This document shows, piece by piece, positions 1-8,085 of a stretch of DNA of 64,000 nucleotides. The position numbers and the translations under genes are program-made. This stretch comes from Klebsormidium nitens (Eukaryota > Plantae > Klebsormidiophyceae), in contig DF237155.1 in NCBI GenBank assembly GCA_000708835.1, positions 79,496-143,495 on the forward strand, written 5' to 3'. Below the pieces are notes generated by a model. That model did not search any database. It was not told the DNA's origin and was given only the letters and a program-made list of their open reading frames with translations. Within the stretch, counting starts at the first letter, position 1; every line of letters begins with the position of its first letter.

Positions 1-1372
1 CTTGCGGCCGGCTCAGCATCCGTAACACCGGTGTCAAGTCCCTTGCGTGCAGCCCCGTCATCAGGTTCTCTGCTGGCAAGTAACCCTCAGGAGCGACACG
101 ACTTTTCAAGTGCCACGCATGCTGACATGGCCCTGCACAAACGTAGGAAACACTGTGAACGATGATAGATAAAGCACTTGTGCTGACATCATCACAAGCT
201 TGCGTGCAGGTGACAAGTGGCGGGTCCTGACATGCATGCAAAATAATATATCCTGGCAGCCGCCTGATGCACCAGTATACCTCAGCAAGGCTGAGATGGA
301 TGTGCGCACTGCCATTGGGCCGCATGGGCACCTGATTCTGGAAAGGAGATTGTATAATCAACTAAGAGGAAGAGGCATGATCCACGCAAGTCGCTCCATC
401 CTGGATGTTATTCGACGTACTGCAAAATGCTCCAATGAAAATCACATGAGAGCTAAAACAAAGGTTATTATTGACACAAAGTCAAAAGCTAAAGCGAAAG
501 CCCAGCCAGAAAACACAATCACATATGAGAGATTCCTCGTCGGAGAAAACTGCTCAATACAAGAGCAAGGTGTCGCCATCAACGCCGCAGTTGTGGTCGT
601 GTTATGAATGCACACTAGAGGCACGAAGTTGGGTTTAAGCAGCAAAGACCACCCATGACCGTTTCTGTTCAGAATCTTCTTGCTGGAACCATCTAACCAA
701 TTCCTGGACAAACGCCGAACAAACACCCCCGGCACTTCCATCAGAGCAGAACCTTCCGCTTCAAAGACAAAAGCGCAACACTGACAGTTTGAGGACTAGA
801 TTAACTTAACACATGCCTGTTGGCAAACTTTACTAGCTGCCTCCAAAGACAAGATTTTTAGATGTGGCCAAAGGCCCTTCGGCGATTGCATTTTTTGTTG
901 CACAGGTGCGCTTCTATAGGAGCAGAGTCCTCTGAAGCTTGGGCCAGGAGCAATGACAGCCACATTGATTAGATTCTCAGCCCCTTATTACTGGCAGTCC
1001 TGTTGCACAAGTGTGTACTCAGCGCCTAACGACGGAAAGGGATAGGCTGAAAGCCCAGTCGCAGCAAAGTCCGAAAGGACCCCCAACTTCAAGGCTTGCA
1101 TTGCATCAAGACGAAGGCGCAATGGTGCAGAAGGGAGCAAGACTCTTACCTATCTTGCAGTTTGAAGTTAAGTGCGGCCCCTTGCTTTGTGATGCACCAG
1201 GTTTAGCTACAGGATACTTGGAGAAGCAGGTCCTGAAGGGAAATGAGTGAAGCATTAACCACACATTGGATGTGACACAAAATGGTGGGCAATAAGTACA
1301 GAAAGATTTGTTCCTCTATGGCAGAATTTTGCAAGGAAGACAGCGGTGGAACATACCCACACACTCAAGTTT

Positions 1373-1612
1373 GAGCTTTCGGCGCACAAAGTCCGCCATT
1401 GAAGGCATTGGCTAATCGCCATTTAGAGATACGAACGCAGTCACGTATCTCTGAGCCCCCAGCGCACAAAGTCCGCATGGTGAGAGCGTGGGCTTATCGC
1501 CTTATGCCAGGGTGTAGGCTGATCGCCTCACCCAATGCTTGGGCTTACCGCCTCGACACATTCAGCAACCCGGGCTTAGCGCCTCACAATGGGCTTAGCG
1601 CCTCAGAGGGGA
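1373..1612. ncRNA. Structured hairpin-array element, copy 1 (candidate intronic RNA or cis-element)
   Basis: Six GGC-N5-GCC stem-loops, two GCGCACAAAGTCCGC motifs, and an AGAGATAC/GTATCTCT stem. Paralogous to 1972-2214. Confidence 0.5.
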
Positions 1613-1971
1613 CAAGACGAAATCTTTGAACAAAGCAAACCAAATGGGTAAGCACCAATGTATCCCAAACTCACATTGCTCAAGATGCAAGCATGAACTG
1701 TTAAGCAAGATTCCAATTCCTACCTGACTTGCAGAGGTATCAGGTTGCTGCTTGCTCTGTCTGTGGTACACCGAGTTCACGTCCACGATGTCTAAGGAAG
1801 GAGGTCCTGAACAAAACCAAGTATAAAATGGATCACAATGGGTGTGACACAATATTGGTTGACACTGTGAGCTTGTCTGTGACGAGCATAGCCAAGAAGT
1901 ACAGCGGTAGAGTACTTTAAAAATCCTACAATAAAGACAGGGATCGCAGAACGCCATAAAATCCTGGGATC

Positions 1972-2214
1972 GAGCCTTCGGCGCACAAAGTCCGCCATCG
2001 AAGGCATTGGCTGACCGCCAAATAGAGGTACCGACATCCACAGTCGCGTACCTCTGAGCCCCCAGCGCACAAAGTCCGCATGGAGAGAGCGTGGGCTTAT
2101 CGCCTTGAGCAAGGGTGTGGGCTGACCGCCTCACCCACTGCTTGGGCTTACCGCCTCCACACACATAGCGACCTGGGCCTAGCGCCTCATGTTGGGCTTA
2201 GCGCCTCGTGGGGA
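1972..2214. ncRNA. Structured hairpin-array element, copy 2
   Basis: Same motif order as copy 1, roughly 85% identical by eye, while flanks are much more diverged. The stem reads AGAGGTAC/GTACCTCT, a compensatory change relative to copy 1. Confidence 0.5.
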
Positions 2215-3299
2215 TCTGTTTTTCTGCTACTACTACTCTAGAGCCCCGCGTCAGGGCCGGTCAGGCATCTGATCGATGCAATGTGAGGAATCTTGAATGT
2301 GCGAGGCTTCTGACTTCACTCACTGCATGATGTTCACAGTGACTCTGAGTGTGGCTTGCACAAAGCGAGGGGGATTCCTTTCAAAAGCGCCCGGAATGGT
2401 TAGCAGAGCGATTTTCTAACCCCTAGATGAAAACCCGTGTGGCGTCGATCAGCTGATACCCTTGAAAGCGTGGTACGTCGATCAATCCTGATACGAATAA
2501 AGTTAAACCCAGTTTAACCTGTAGCCGACAGGCCGTTTCAGGTTGCGTAGGCACGAGCTTGGGCGAATCGCCATCTGCCACGTGTCACATTCTCTGTCAT
2601 TTGAACTCAGTCTTTGATTCCCCCGGGGCTCTCCACCGGGAAGTCTTCCAGCTTCAAGTACCGTATCGGTAATCGTAGCGGATATCGCCACCATTGCAAG
2701 ACACAGTGTGGGGACTCAAGGATGACAGGACTCAACCTTTGGGACCGACATGAAGTTGGCCGGGACTCGCCGGGAGGAACTGAGCACCGGCCTTTGACTT
2801 GACCGACTGATATCAACTGTCCGATTGGTGACATTTGGACAATCTGACGGCTGACATGTAATTGATGGCTTCATGTGATCAAGGCTGCAACTTCATGGCT
2901 GAAGGCTCACTTGAGAAAATGCTTATCCTGGCAGTTAGTGTACAGTCTATGTTACAAAACAGTTTCCCAAATGCTTCAAGTTAGCGCAGGCTGCAACTAA
3001 GCAGCTTGCCCGTCCTGCCCCGGGCGCTCCTTTTGTTATTCTAAGAATGTGTCGGTGTTCTCCAGACGACCTTGCTACCACCTTTGCCAGTTTTAAAGGA
3101 CACGTCTCCCATCGACAACCCTGATAAGCGCTCCAACCACACACACGTCGGTCACCAAGTCCCAGAAGAATCGGGTCAAAGCAGTGAAAGCTGTACAGCG
3201 AGGTGAGGTAAGGTATACTAGGACTCCACTTAGTTCAATTTGAGCAGCTTCTAAATGGGCGTCGTTCTAACACACATGACTCCTTACGAAACTGCCTGG

Positions 3300-6200
3300 T
3301 CACGTGCCTTCCATGTTTTCCGAGTCCTGCGGCGGCGGGTCGTCCTTTGCACTGTTTTGAATTACGATGCTGGGCCGCCTCCGATGAAACAACGGCGCGC
3401 CGGGGGTGGCGGGCACGCTTGCATTCGCAGACTGCTCTCGTTGGGGGGTGGAGAACGAGAGCGTGACGCCCGTGCCAAACCCCCGGGACACGGTCGGTAG
3501 GCCTCTCTCGGGGGGAGGCGTGGTCGCCCCCGTCCAGCTAAAACTCCGGTTAAAGGCGGCGGTTAGGGAGCCCTGGGGCGGGGACGGGGAACCTTGCAGG
3601 GGGCTCTGCCGGGCGCCTTGCTGGACCCCCCGGAACTCGGGGCTCGCCGACTGGTAAAACCCGGGCCGGGGAGTAGACGCAAAGCTCCCCCCCGGCTGCT
3701 GGATCGTTTGCATGGTCGCGCTCTTGCGCGTTCTACCAGCACTGCTCGGCTGATCGATCAGCGGAGGGATGAAGGTTGGGGGGGCGAAGATGCTTCTGGG
3801 AGAGGCCTTGTCGTGCTCGTCCCTGTCCTGGGCGTCGTCCTCCATGGCTGTGGCGGCCTGCGACTCGGGCCCAGACGGGGCCTCCTCTGACACCTTTTCC
3901 CGCCCACCAAAAGTGGGAGTCCCTGCTACGGCCGACGTGCCTAGCTTTGAAAGGGAAGAGTCTGCTTGGGGGCGGCGGTCGGAGGAGTGGAGACCGGAGG
4001 AAGACGGCACTGAGGCGCTCCGGCTGCGCGCCACCTGTAACAGGCGAGGCACAGCGTCAGGTCGTGGGGATATCGCGAAAACAGAGTCTGTGCTATTTGA
4101 TGCTGACTCGATGCTGGATACAAAGCCTTATGAAACTCGGTCGCTGCAAGAGACCCAATCACAGTATCCAAGATCGTACTACTCCTGGAAAGTGCAGGTT
4201 TTCCACTTAGAGAAATCCCTGAGGGCTACAAACTCTGGGCAGCAGACATGGTTGCGAACGTTGCAAATGTCATTGCAACGTCAATGAACGAAAGGAAGAG
4301 CTCAAATGCCCCTCACTTGCATGCAGCTCCCTCTGTCCGTGAAGCTTCCGTAGTCCGGCGAGCTCGTCAGCTCCAGACTGTTGGCTTTCAACCGCGGCTT
4401 CCACACCACTTTCCTCTCCCCCTGCTGCGCACTCCCCTGCCATTGCTTCCCGCCACTCGTCAGGGGGGGGAAGTCCTCTGTATCAGTCGGCCCCCACCCG
4501 GGGCTCATCGGCTCTCCCGGACTGAGCGGATCCTCCTTTCCGTCCATTAGGTTACTCGCCCCCGCTTTCCACTGGGGCGACTTCTGCTGATTTACAATCC
4601 CGCTTAGCGGAGGGGACTTCGGCGCCGTTCCCCAGAGACCCTTTGCTGGTCGTGGGGTGGTTCCAAACCCGTCTGCTAACCCCCTCGCTGACCCGGTTCC
4701 GCCTTGAGGACTCCACCCGGGCTTTTGCGCCGCTATACCATTTTCCGCACCGCCCCACTTGCGCACAGTTTGCGAATTCCACTGCGATCCCGCAGGCCGG
4801 AAATCCGAGATCGCCCGCTTCTCATCCTGCTCCCACCCAGCGTTCAGGTCTTTCTTCACGGTCGATTCCCCCCAGCCCTTTACCCGAGTAGTTTGCTGCC
4901 TCCACCCCCCTTTCAAATCCTCGTTCCTACCAGCATTGGACTGGAACGTCGCCTCGCTGGACATATCTCGCGTCTCCTTTTCTGTTTCCCTCTTCCCGTC
5001 CTGCAAGCCCTCTTGCCCCCCCGTTTCATCCATCATCGCCCCTTCCTGGGGGTCCATTTCCGGCACTGGCGATAGGACCGACTGTCCCCCCCCCGGTGCC
5101 GGAACCCACCCCGGCTTCCCCTCTACCACCCCCTCCCTCGCCCCCGACTCCACCCCCCGGTTAAGCCTAAACTCGGGCGGGTTACCCATGGCCAACGCCG
5201 ACGGTCCTAGCTTAAAACCGCTCGACACAGACTGGCCCAGACCGGAGGGGACTTGCGTTGGGGAGTGCGCAGTGGAGGGGGCTTGGCCGCGCATTTGCAG
5301 GGAGCGCAGCAGGGCCGCGCGGCGAAGGTTTGCAGACTGGGCGGGGTCGCTAGGGGAGGGAGGAAGACGGCTGTCCCCCTCCTTTTGCTGCAGCGCGTGG
5401 TGCCGAGAAGGGATGGCGTACGGGTGGGTGCTCGTGTGAGCTGGGATGCCCCATGCGCCAGGGCCTGAAAAAGACAAGCTTTCATCTCGTCAAGAGACAA
5501 AGTCCGAGGCTAACGAGGGGCAGAACTCAGATGGAAGATGCTGCAGACTGGTAGTACAGGCTTACAGGCAAAAAGCAGGGCTTCTCTCAGACGAATTGCA
5601 AGGGAACAAACTAACGAAGAGGAATGCAATCGCGCCACAGCAGGTTGCAAAGCCAGCCCAGCTTCGGCTTGACAAGGGGAAAATCTCCAAACACAAGCAA
5701 CTCTTCTTTGTCAAACAAAGCTTTCAGCAATAAAGCTTACCGGTAACCGCCGGAGGGACGGGGCTGGCCAGGCTTGAGGTCGCCAGGTTGGACGCTGCGA
5801 TCCCCCCTCCGTTTGGGCGCCTCCTCGTCCCGTCTGGGCCATAGGCAGCCTCAGGGGACTTGAACTGCGCCTCCTGCATCAGCATGTTGTTGCGCCGCCA
5901 GCTGCCAGGGCTGCTGTCGTCATCCGTATCGCCGTTGTCGTCGCTCATCGCAGAGTCGCCCTGGTTCGACATCATATCGTCCCTGCAGGGCGGAAGGTTG
6001 CTTCACATACGCCCATGGTGATTGAACATTGCAGCCCAGTAAAGGTCCTCACATGGGCCTTGTTTATTGTGCACAAAAGCTATAGGTGTGAGTGTTGCTG
6101 AAAGGTAGCCACCCATGTTCAATCACCCATATCCTCCTTGGAAAGCTCTCATTAGGAGTTTAGGCAATAGCGATACTCCAAGCAAGAAAGAAGAAACAAA

Positions 6201-7045
6201 GAGCCTATCTAGACCCTCACCCTCCGGCAGAGAGAGCGGCGGAGCTGTAACGGGGCAGGCTGCCCATGAAACGCTGCTCCATAAGCGACCCCCCCTCGCT
6301 GGGAAGCGAGCTGGATAAAAGCTCAGACATCGGGGGGCCGTCCGTTCCATCGTCTTTGGAGTCGCCAACTTTGAGAAGGTTCAAGCTGGAGGCCATCATC
6401 TGCATTGAAAGCATATTCACGCAATTGTGTCTTCAGGTTAAAATTTGTTCGTACAATGCAGTATTATTTTGTTGGTGAGGCCTGTTGTACCTTGATAGGA
6501 AACCATCCAGATCTGCTCGAGAGATTGTAGGAATAATATTCATGGGATAATTATACTAGAAGTGGCTTGTGCCACATAACTGCTTGCATAATGCATACTG
6601 CTTGCAAACAGGGCATTGTACGCCAGCACTGGAAAAGCACGGGTGACAGCACGTGTTGCAGCGGCAAATCTGAAGCGCTACTGCAGTATGAGTTACATTT
6701 AAGCATTTCGCAAAGTGTAACTTGACCTTATTCATATCCCGGCTGACGACATGCTCTGTCCTTATCAACCACCTCTCAATACACAGCATTGTGTCAAGCC
6801 CGCTCATAACATTTTCCGCTCACCTCCGTTAGATAGCGCTTGGACACATGATAATTGTCCAGCGTGACTGCATCAGCATCCACCGGCCGAGGCCGCTTGT
6901 TCGCGCCCGATGTTGGGAGGCCATCTAGCAGATAGCTGGTCTTACTGGGGCTTCCAGAAAAGGACCGCAGGCCCAGCCCTGGGGGACGGCCGCCAATGTC
7001 CCCCGTCATACCTAGCCGGGCCCTCACAAGGTATTCTGAATCCAT
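3300..7045 (-). CDS. Uncharacterised, largely disordered Ser/Pro/Gly-rich protein, 5 exons
   Basis: Phase-consistent GT-AG exons 7045-6824, 6399-6221, 5982-5741, 5464-4317, 4034-3300. Short ordered-looking motifs KRPRP..HVSKRYLTE-MMASSLNLL and LRRAALLRSLQMR. Start codon uncertain. Confidence 0.75.
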
Positions 7046-8085
7046 TGCTCTTACAGCGGGTATGGGTTACCGGTGATATTGCTTGATTGGACTACCTTCC
7101 ACAAAGGCTTATGTTTGTGGAAAAAACTGTCAAGTTTATTGAGAGGCCACTTCTCATCAACATGGATCAGATGTGGTGCGAATTACAATAACCCTGTCTC
7201 GATGACTGGAAAAAAAAAATGTACTGCTGAGCTCCTCAGAAAGAGAGGGGTCCATTTACACGACCTCAACGAGTCACTGCTAACATGGGGCCCGATTATC
7301 GCCCAATGTTGCCAGCCGGCTTCAAATCTCGAGCTGTCAAACTGAAGCATCAGAATTGGGGCTCTCCCCGCGATATTACAACCAGCCCCGTTGGGAACGC
7401 GACAGGCACTTCACGTCTCTGGCTGAAAGAAGCCGGGCATGGAACCCCAAATTCATCTGCTTTGGATGCCATGCTTTCTGCCAGGGTAGTGGCTGGCCCC
7501 TCCTCTCCTTCCACTGTTCCGATTCAGAATCCAGGGCCGCGCCATTGCCATTGGCATTGGCGTGAGGGCGCCATGATGCTGATGAATTTACCATATTACA
7601 TAACCCGAATCGACGGAGTCAATTTCGAGTGCGCGTGTTTTCGCGCAAGATCGTAGCTCTCCCGGGCTCCCGGCCCCTCCACACCGTACTGCAGATTCCA
7701 GGTCAACTTGCGCCGGTTTGTTCGCGCAGAGCCCGCGCAATATGACGATTCAAATTTCCTTCCAAGTTACCGGCACATGTCAATGTCATACTGTAAACCG
7801 CATTCCGTCAATCCGAATCTAGACTCATGATTCCGGTTGTAGCACAGGCAGGCGCAGGCTTGAGCGGAATGCAGAGATCAGCTCTTCCCTTTCAATCTGA
7901 AAACTTCAAAGTTTAGGGAGGGAGACGAGGAAGCAGGCCTGCAGCTGAGCTGTTGAGGCTCCTTGCTAATATTAGGCCTTCTCGTTGCAAGCAGGGCGTA
8001 AATAAGTCGTGCGGAAAGTTCTTGGAATTTGCACCAAAAAGCCACATCAAATCGAACATAAGCAGGGGTTGGGGAGGCAGACGCA

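Follow-up and report, generated by a model that had tools for sequence, protein, structure and literature searches.

A conserved motif-rich non-coding element at the first exon and first 5′ splice site of a Klebsormidium nitens transcript

INTRODUCTION

The locus described here raises the question of what kind of element is repeated at it. The window, i.e. the whole stretch of DNA that was analysed, comprises 64,000 nucleotides of Klebsormidium nitens (contig DF237155.1). Near its left end lie two direct copies of a sequence of about 240 nt. An earlier note, made from the letters alone, described the copies as arrays of GGC-N5-GCC stem-loops, each standing alone in a minus-strand intron, and proposed an undescribed intron-encoded RNA of the snoRNA/scaRNA kind or, as a fallback, a multivalent splicing element. 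Here we ask where the copies lie in the transcript, which of their parts are conserved between species, and to what extent they fold.

RESULTS

Two copies built from 13-nt motifs and 15-nt boxes

The statement that the two copies are better conserved than their flanks was borne out. In the window, a repeat finder paired 1373-1432 with 1972-2031 (88% identity) and 1438-1604 with 2041-2207 (89%), and in an alignment of 1140-1740 against 1715-2340, two units of about 600 bp, the flanks are far more diverged than both copies. For comparison, three relatives were obtained by protein search with the neighbouring upstream gene, and their contigs were compared. The closest relative is represented by the Logan contig L001, extended as L004, with exons about 80-87% identical in DNA. 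The parts of the two copies, and one isolated motif, are as follows.

1373..1612, minus strand: copy A, a paralogue of the leader and donor region, within intron 2
1972..2214, minus strand: copy B; 2214-2052 are part of exon 1, and 2051-1972 are the first 80 nt of intron 1
2193-2205, 2174-2186, 2143-2155, 2118-2130 and 2092-2104, minus strand: five exact 13-nt motifs, sense GGCGNTNRGCCCA, in exon 1 (span 2092..2205)
2007..2019, minus strand: sixth motif, GGCGGTCAGCCAA, which includes CCAAT, in intron 1
2065..2079, minus strand: box 1, sense GCGGACTTTGTGCGC, 13 nt upstream of the 5′ splice site; extended hairpin 2056-2092
1981..1995, minus strand: box 2, same sequence as box 1, in intron 1; extended hairpin 1972-2007
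2560..2572, minus strand: lone motif-like 13-mer with one mismatch, upstream of the transcript start; absent from the corresponding site of the relative

For the pattern GGCNNANCGCC, 15 occurrences were counted in the 64-kb window, against an expectation of 2.3, and 12 of the 15 fall within the two copies, at exactly the places where the twelve GGC-N5-GCC sites had been listed. Likewise, the 15-mer GCGCACAAAGTCCGC is found four times in the window, two per copy, in agreement with the two identical GCG..CGC boxes described for each. In copy B, the two identical palindromic boxes bracket the first splice donor. All motifs share one orientation and lie downstream of the mapped 5′ ends. An RGCCCA core is present in 9 of the 12 units, the exceptions being AGCCAA (twice), AGCCTA and AGCCCG. 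Tandem Repeats Finder detected no regular array, and the spacing of the motifs is irregular (19-31 nt). The 13-mer was not found in the window's other genes.

The third motif, GGCGGTAAGCCCA (2143-2155 and 1540-1552; 6982-6994 in L001), includes a near-consensus 5′ splice site, G|GTAAG. Use of this site was seen in no contig.

Copy B is the leader and first splice site of a spliced transcript

Contigs from one DNA run and three probable RNA runs (the type was guessed) were placed on positions 1-6000 of the window. Transcript evidence here means assembled contigs, in which start usage, minor isoforms and small RNAs are not visible. The splice joints 131/1149, 1231/1723 and 1805/2051 were each found in one spliced contig in each of two RNA runs from different studies. 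The ends of all three joints read CT..AC, corresponding to GT..AG on the minus strand, and none of the joints was present in the DNA run. The resulting gene structure is listed below.

2052..2254, minus strand: exon 1, a non-coding leader; RNA contigs reach 2228 (run X5) and 2254 (run X6)
2050..2051, minus strand: GT of the first 5′ splice site, sense AGAG|GTACGC, inside the 5′ arm of the 'long stem' of the earlier note
1807..2051, minus strand: intron 1, GT..AG, 245 nt
1724..1806, minus strand: exon 2, 83 nt, no ATG, non-coding
1233..1723, minus strand: intron 2, 491 nt, which holds copy A
1150..1232, minus strand: exon 3, 83 nt, no ATG, a paralogue of exon 2
133..1149, minus strand: intron 3, 1017 nt
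1..132, minus strand: exon 4, which continues past the left window edge

Because contigs extend to 2254, the true start lies at or beyond this position. The spliced contigs place the donor at 2051-2050, and copy B is therefore not intronic. Thus the claim that each copy sits alone in a minus-strand intron holds for copy A, which lies in intron 2, but not for copy B, of which 2052-2214 belong to exon 1 and whose 'long stem' contains the donor itself. At the homologous site copy A reads AGAG|ATAC (AT at 1448-1447), i.e. the GT has been lost. The exon part of copy B is accordingly contained in spliced RNA contigs; copy A was covered by no RNA contig.

The contig depth of the host transcript was 313 and 54 in two studies, and in the third run no host contigs were present (X5, X6 and X10 were compared), while the neighbouring gene had a depth of 133 in that run. 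This suggests that expression of the host is condition-dependent, with the limit that absence cannot be proven by contigs.

Coding potential

Reading frames were inspected exon by exon for exons 1-4. Three short uORFs are found in exon 1 and two more in exon 4, ahead of the first open ATG at 61. This ATG is absent from the relative, in which exon 4 is only about 65% identical. No conserved ORF was seen in exons 1-4 when the window and the relative were compared. The large ORFs downstream in L004 contain no Pfam domain, a 774-aa ORF had no match except itself, and no plus-strand coding conservation was observed between L004 and the contig L125 of a more distant relative. The host transcript may be non-coding, or it may carry a leader heavily loaded with uORFs.

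Within the element, between 1 and 4 synonymous and between 6 and 9 non-synonymous differing codons were counted in all six frames. A protein-coding reading, or one as a conserved-peptide uORF, was rejected, as no frame has a synonymous excess. A stop-free frame without an ATG runs through the entire copy B in both species (window 1970-2197, minus strand; L001 6937-7230). A profile of this frame gave 0 matches in 1.84 billion protein representatives, and the frame is probably a side effect of composition.

One tandem duplication and a shared history of the copies

The units 1140-1740 and 1715-2340 are collinear and comprise the leader element, the remainder of the intron, the 83-nt exon and its donor. 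Since the alignment includes exons and splice sites, both copies belong to a single tandem duplication spanning about 600 bp; neighbouring collinear units of this composition are what a tandem exon-intron duplication consists of. The relative has the same syntenic layout, with an upstream copy at 6940-7168 and a downstream copy at 7597-7790 (L001/L004) and orthologous mini-exons at 7361-7445 and 7943-8027. The duplication is therefore older than the split of the two algae.

Identities among the four copies do not track orthology. Copy B of the window is 85% identical to copy A and 85% identical to the relative's upstream copy. Copy A and the relative's upstream copy share 81%, and the relative's intronic copy is 71-76% identical to each of the others. 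Copy B carries 9 private changes and copy A 17; a further 19 are either private to the relative's upstream copy or common to both window copies. In copy A, there are a 4-nt deletion, the donor change and two changes at otherwise invariant motif positions. On the simplest reading of these substitutions, gene conversion from copy B replaced the sequence of copy A once the two species had separated, and copy A has since evolved about twice as fast as copy B. The relative's intronic copy, evidently not refreshed in this way, appears as a decayed sequence.

Conservation is concentrated in the motifs and boxes of copy B

The element is known from two species, and the tests of selection and structure use four sequences. 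Copy B is the copy that has been kept between species. Comparing the window with the relative, its exon part is 87% and its intron part 88% identical, against 65-70% (aligned parts, with many gaps) for the rest of intron 1, introns 2 and 3, exons 3 and 4 and the proximal promoter. Within copy B, 84 of 87 positions in motifs and boxes are identical (97%), compared with 93 of 117 in the spacers (80%; Fisher p=2.7e-4). No such additional conservation of motifs was observed in the relative's intronic copy, where motif columns are 75% and the remainder 76% identical. Judged by this comparison of sequences, copy B is evidently under purifying selection, with the motifs and boxes as the apparent selected units. 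As conservation is equal on either side of the donor, a role in the mature mRNA only, e.g. in translation control, fails to account for it.

RNA folding

Two hairpins were of particular relevance.

2020..2058, minus strand: hairpin enclosing the 5′ splice site, −20.1 kcal/mol, z −3.3 in the window genome
2106..2142, minus strand: hairpin M4, around the fourth 13-nt motif, the only one that, with compensatory changes, recurs in copies A and B and in the orthologous copy

Folding of the whole element did not stand out, with z values of −1.8 for copy A (sense strand), −1.0 for copy B together with its leader and −2.2 for the orthologue. With RNAalifold, the covariation term for the four copies was +1.06, i.e. 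there is no net support.

The earlier note had also reported a long stem that differs between the copies by a double compensatory change. Both versions are present in the sequence, with the arms AGAGATAC/GTATCTCT at 1425-1432/1445-1452 in copy A and AGAGGTAC/GTACCTCT at 2024-2031/2048-2055 in copy B, but the orthologue has not retained the compensatory stem. The splice-site hairpin has −13.7 kcal/mol in copy A and is unformed in both copies of the relative (z +0.4 and +0.2). As the stem is absent there, the double compensatory change amounts to a single event confined to this genome. We estimate the chance of one such compensatory pair among the predicted pairs at about 10%.

The twelve iterated stem-loops could not be upheld. 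With the motif fixed, the flanks of five of the six units per copy pair no better than shuffled flanks (fractions 0.39-0.81), and these five are bare 3-bp GGC/GCC mini-stems, which are themselves part of the repeated 13-nt motif. The exception is M4, with energies of −18, −18 and −25.5 kcal/mol, z values of −2.6 to −4.2, and flank-shuffle fractions of 0.065, 0.011 and 0.001. Compensatory changes in M4 are A-U to C-G and A.C / A-U / G-C. Boxes 1 and 2 can each be extended to a sense-strand hairpin of about 35 nt, for which G.U pairs are needed; the antisense hairpins are somewhat less stable. With the box fixed, the outer stems are weakly above chance (0.01-0.22). Covariation of these outer stems between paralogues was dropped as evidence, the alignment being ambiguous and the flank-shuffle test weak. 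M4 and the box hairpins are lost in the relative's decaying copy. In sum, instead of twelve hairpins the element has a single good one, with two more that are possible.

Searches for further copies and known families

No match to Rfam was obtained for the window at the gathering score, for the element at E<=1, or for 20 kb of the relative. When a profile of the four copies was run against the 64-kb window and about 66 kb of related loci (L004, and L002/L125 and L003 from two more distant relatives), nothing beyond the local pair in the window and in the closest relative was recovered. In this set, L125 stops about 2 kb before the expected 5′ end of the host and L003 550 nt past the neighbouring gene. 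The DNA-run contig depth over the copies is about 20, equal to that of the single-copy flanks, and the DNA-run contigs are interrupted only at a 28-nt stretch common to both copies. The repeat finder detected no inverted-repeat pair around the copies, and the earlier statement that terminal inverted repeats are lacking stands.

A metagenome scan for two 13-mers spaced 6-36 nt apart returned at least 120 loci, all of them unrelated bacterial-type tandem repeats, and no homologue. Nothing was found in a word-index search with the terminal exon of the neighbour. IRE, histone stem-loop, E2F, NFI and Pol III B-box were considered by eye against their consensus sequences and rejected for mismatches at invariant positions.

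Upstream region and neighbouring genes

Two blocks were identified upstream of the transcript.

2368..2400, minus strand: promoter block ACCATTCCGGG...GGAATCCCCCT, kept and collinear in the relative
2576..2586, minus strand: perfect G-box/ABRE-like block GACACGTGGCA, also at 6562-6572 in L004; about 365 nt upstream of the element in both

The promoter may respond to light or stress. The spacer that separates the neighbouring gene from the host promoter measures about 2.3 kb in the relative (L004 4653-6940) and about 0.7 kb in the window. The larger spacer carries a 252-aa ORF without Pfam match and an exact lone 13-mer at 5065-5077, and its enlargement may be an insertion.

The upstream neighbour (2905 to about 7045, minus strand) is spliced, with introns at 4032-4313 and 5464-5739. 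Its product is long and of low complexity, has no Pfam domain, and shows short matches to uncharacterised moss, fern and conifer proteins. An inverted repeat rich in G/C homopolymers at 5084-5104 coincides with breaks of DNA and RNA contigs, which probably reflect assembly difficulty and not biology. Downstream of the host, a convergent gene (L004 10845-12177, minus strand; L125 1928-3086) encodes a small Cys-rich protein with CCLRFW.CAICW.CSE..VQCCCFSC and a PQQAMGYPQ-type stretch, 62-67% conserved with the distant relative. Host RNA contigs may extend into the 3′ end of this gene. In the distant relative (L002/L125), a block with an ABC1/UbiB kinase gene and a large ORF has the opposite orientation to that in L004 and lies beside the neighbouring gene, so that gene order near the host locus differs between the two.

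DISCUSSION

Proposed function and alternative explanations

The best reading of copy B is that of a conserved, motif-rich control region near the transcription start, which comprises the first exon and the first splice site. The tandem duplication of about 600 bp took in the 83-nt exon along with the leader and intron 1. The second leader came to lie in intron 2, lost its GT donor and is decaying. That copy A still looks fresh in this genome is explained by an exchange of sequence with copy B, most simply gene conversion, that was later than the separation from the relative. The array itself could be a homotypic cluster of putative sites for one sequence-specific factor, and it would act in cis on transcription and first-intron processing of a condition-dependent transcript.

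Whether such sites are read in DNA or in RNA is the main point on which the explanations differ. We tentatively prefer, though at somewhat less than an even chance, that the motif array is read mainly as double-stranded DNA, i.e. as a promoter-proximal or downstream enhancer and not as RNA hairpins. This is favoured because the conserved feature is the letters and not the pairings, and because further copies of the motif are found ahead of the transcript start (window 2560-2572, with a single mismatch; L004 5065-5077, exact). It is also favoured because the RGCCCA core is the plant site II consensus and because cis-elements in plant 5′ UTRs are documented (PMC3022908). However, motifs of the same direction downstream of the 5′ ends also suit an RNA-level reading, M4 carries real compensatory changes, the box hairpins are stabler on the sense than on the antisense strand, the lone upstream motifs are not kept in position, and the selection and structure tests are limited to four sequences from two species. 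Several of these points are what one would expect of a pre-mRNA element, in which M4 and the two paralogous box hairpins bracket the donor and the GGC-GNUNA-GCC units bind an RNA-binding protein multivalently, thereby tuning the use of a weak donor (GAG|GUACGC), retention or stability. The fallback of the earlier note thus remains a live and serious rival, although a somewhat less probable one than the DNA reading: array and boxes do bracket the donor, conservation of 87% and 88% on its two sides fits a role in the pre-mRNA, M4 is stable (−18, −18 and −25.5 kcal/mol, z −2.6 to −4.2) with compensatory changes, the box hairpins use G.U pairs and are stabler on the sense strand, and the hairpins are gone from the relative's decaying copy. 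What weakens it is that five of the six motif units are 3-bp stems at shuffle level, that the outer stems of the boxes are weakly above chance (0.01-0.22), that the splice-site hairpin is unformed in the orthologue, and that there is no net covariation, with whole-element z values between −1.0 and −2.2. A more elaborate proposal, which seems to us unlikely, is a lineage-specific RNA platform: six GGC-GNUNA-GCC pentaloop mini-hairpins and the twin hairpins at the first 5′ splice site would bind one protein multivalently on the nascent transcript and would thereby govern how this stress-conditional and probably non-coding RNA is spliced or retained on chromatin.

The remaining explanations take the copies to be by-products, independent RNAs or insertions. 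It is improbable that the element has no function of its own and is a minisatellite-like leader, similar through gene conversion and local low divergence, whose copies are by-products of exon-border duplications. Conversion does best explain the similarity of A and B in this genome, and the intronic copy of the relative is decaying, but conversion within a genome cannot yield 87-88% identity between species beside flanks of 65-70%, and the contrast between motifs and spacers (p=2.7e-4) would be left unexplained. The proposal of a stand-alone structured ncRNA of about 240 nt, processed from introns like snoRNAs or scaRNAs, has been largely refuted, and we regard it as very improbable. It could draw on the intronic position of copy A and on the presence of several local hairpins, but the constrained copy is exon 1 with the donor and not an intron insert, the decaying copy is the intronic one, copy A is without an RNA contig, and neither box features nor an Rfam family, even at E<=1, were found. 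Two similar copies with sharp borders might also be taken for a transposon-derived repeat (MITE or SINE) that was inserted twice. We give this almost no weight, given that the copies belong to one collinear tandem unit that includes exons, are syntenic in the relative, have single-copy DNA depth and no visible terminal inverted repeats, and have no other copy in the 64 kb and the roughly 66 kb of related loci covered by the profile search.

This case shows that an intronic-looking repeat can be misread when transcript evidence is not at hand. The preferred reading, a conserved control region at the transcript start, makes the module a small, clean example of selected non-coding DNA in an early-diverging streptophyte, with a decaying copy as a natural 'control'. 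To our knowledge, few pairs of a cis-element and its factor are known in Klebsormidium. If a factor that reads the motif were found, it would provide such a defined pair and also a direct test of whether start-proximal arrays are read as DNA or as nascent RNA.

Comparison with known systems

Site II motifs (TGGGCY) cluster together with telo boxes in plant 5′ flanks and 5′ UTRs, and cis-elements within plant 5′ UTRs are documented (PMC3022908). The likeness to the present element is a short motif iterated near the transcription start, partly in the 5′ UTR. The core RGCCCA is the reverse complement of TGGGCY, but this is a resemblance only, as is the CCAAT in the sixth motif. Of the site II/TCP element, only this core hexamer is shared. 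In contrast to site II clusters, the unit here is 13 nt long, not 6, and has an invariant GGCG half. The array is situated 3′ of the mapped 5′ ends, extends into intron 1, and is found at one locus only, not across housekeeping or growth-related promoters.

Cases are known in which an RNA hairpin masks a 5′ splice site or lies beside it, e.g. the tau exon 10 stem-loop and TSL2 of SMN2. The donor hairpin of −20 kcal/mol in this genome and the two identical hairpins that bracket the donor resemble these cases. On the other hand, the orthologue does not form the donor hairpin, and alternative splicing has not been documented at this locus. With the MS2/PP7 operators and the CsrB/RsmZ sponges, the element shares an iterated unit with a fixed 'loop', G-N-U-N-A between GGC and GCC. 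It differs from them in having 3-bp stems, at shuffle level in five of six units, and in forming the 5′ end of a spliced transcript instead of a free small RNA.

Copy A resembles a snoRNA or scaRNA gene in standing alone within an intron, the host transcript having little coding potential. Here, however, C/D and H/ACA features and an Rfam match are lacking, the conserved copy is exonic, and the copy in the intron is decaying. The element is not evidence for a new RNA class. Measured against these systems, it is a conserved non-coding module specific to one locus, of a familiar kind though not previously described.
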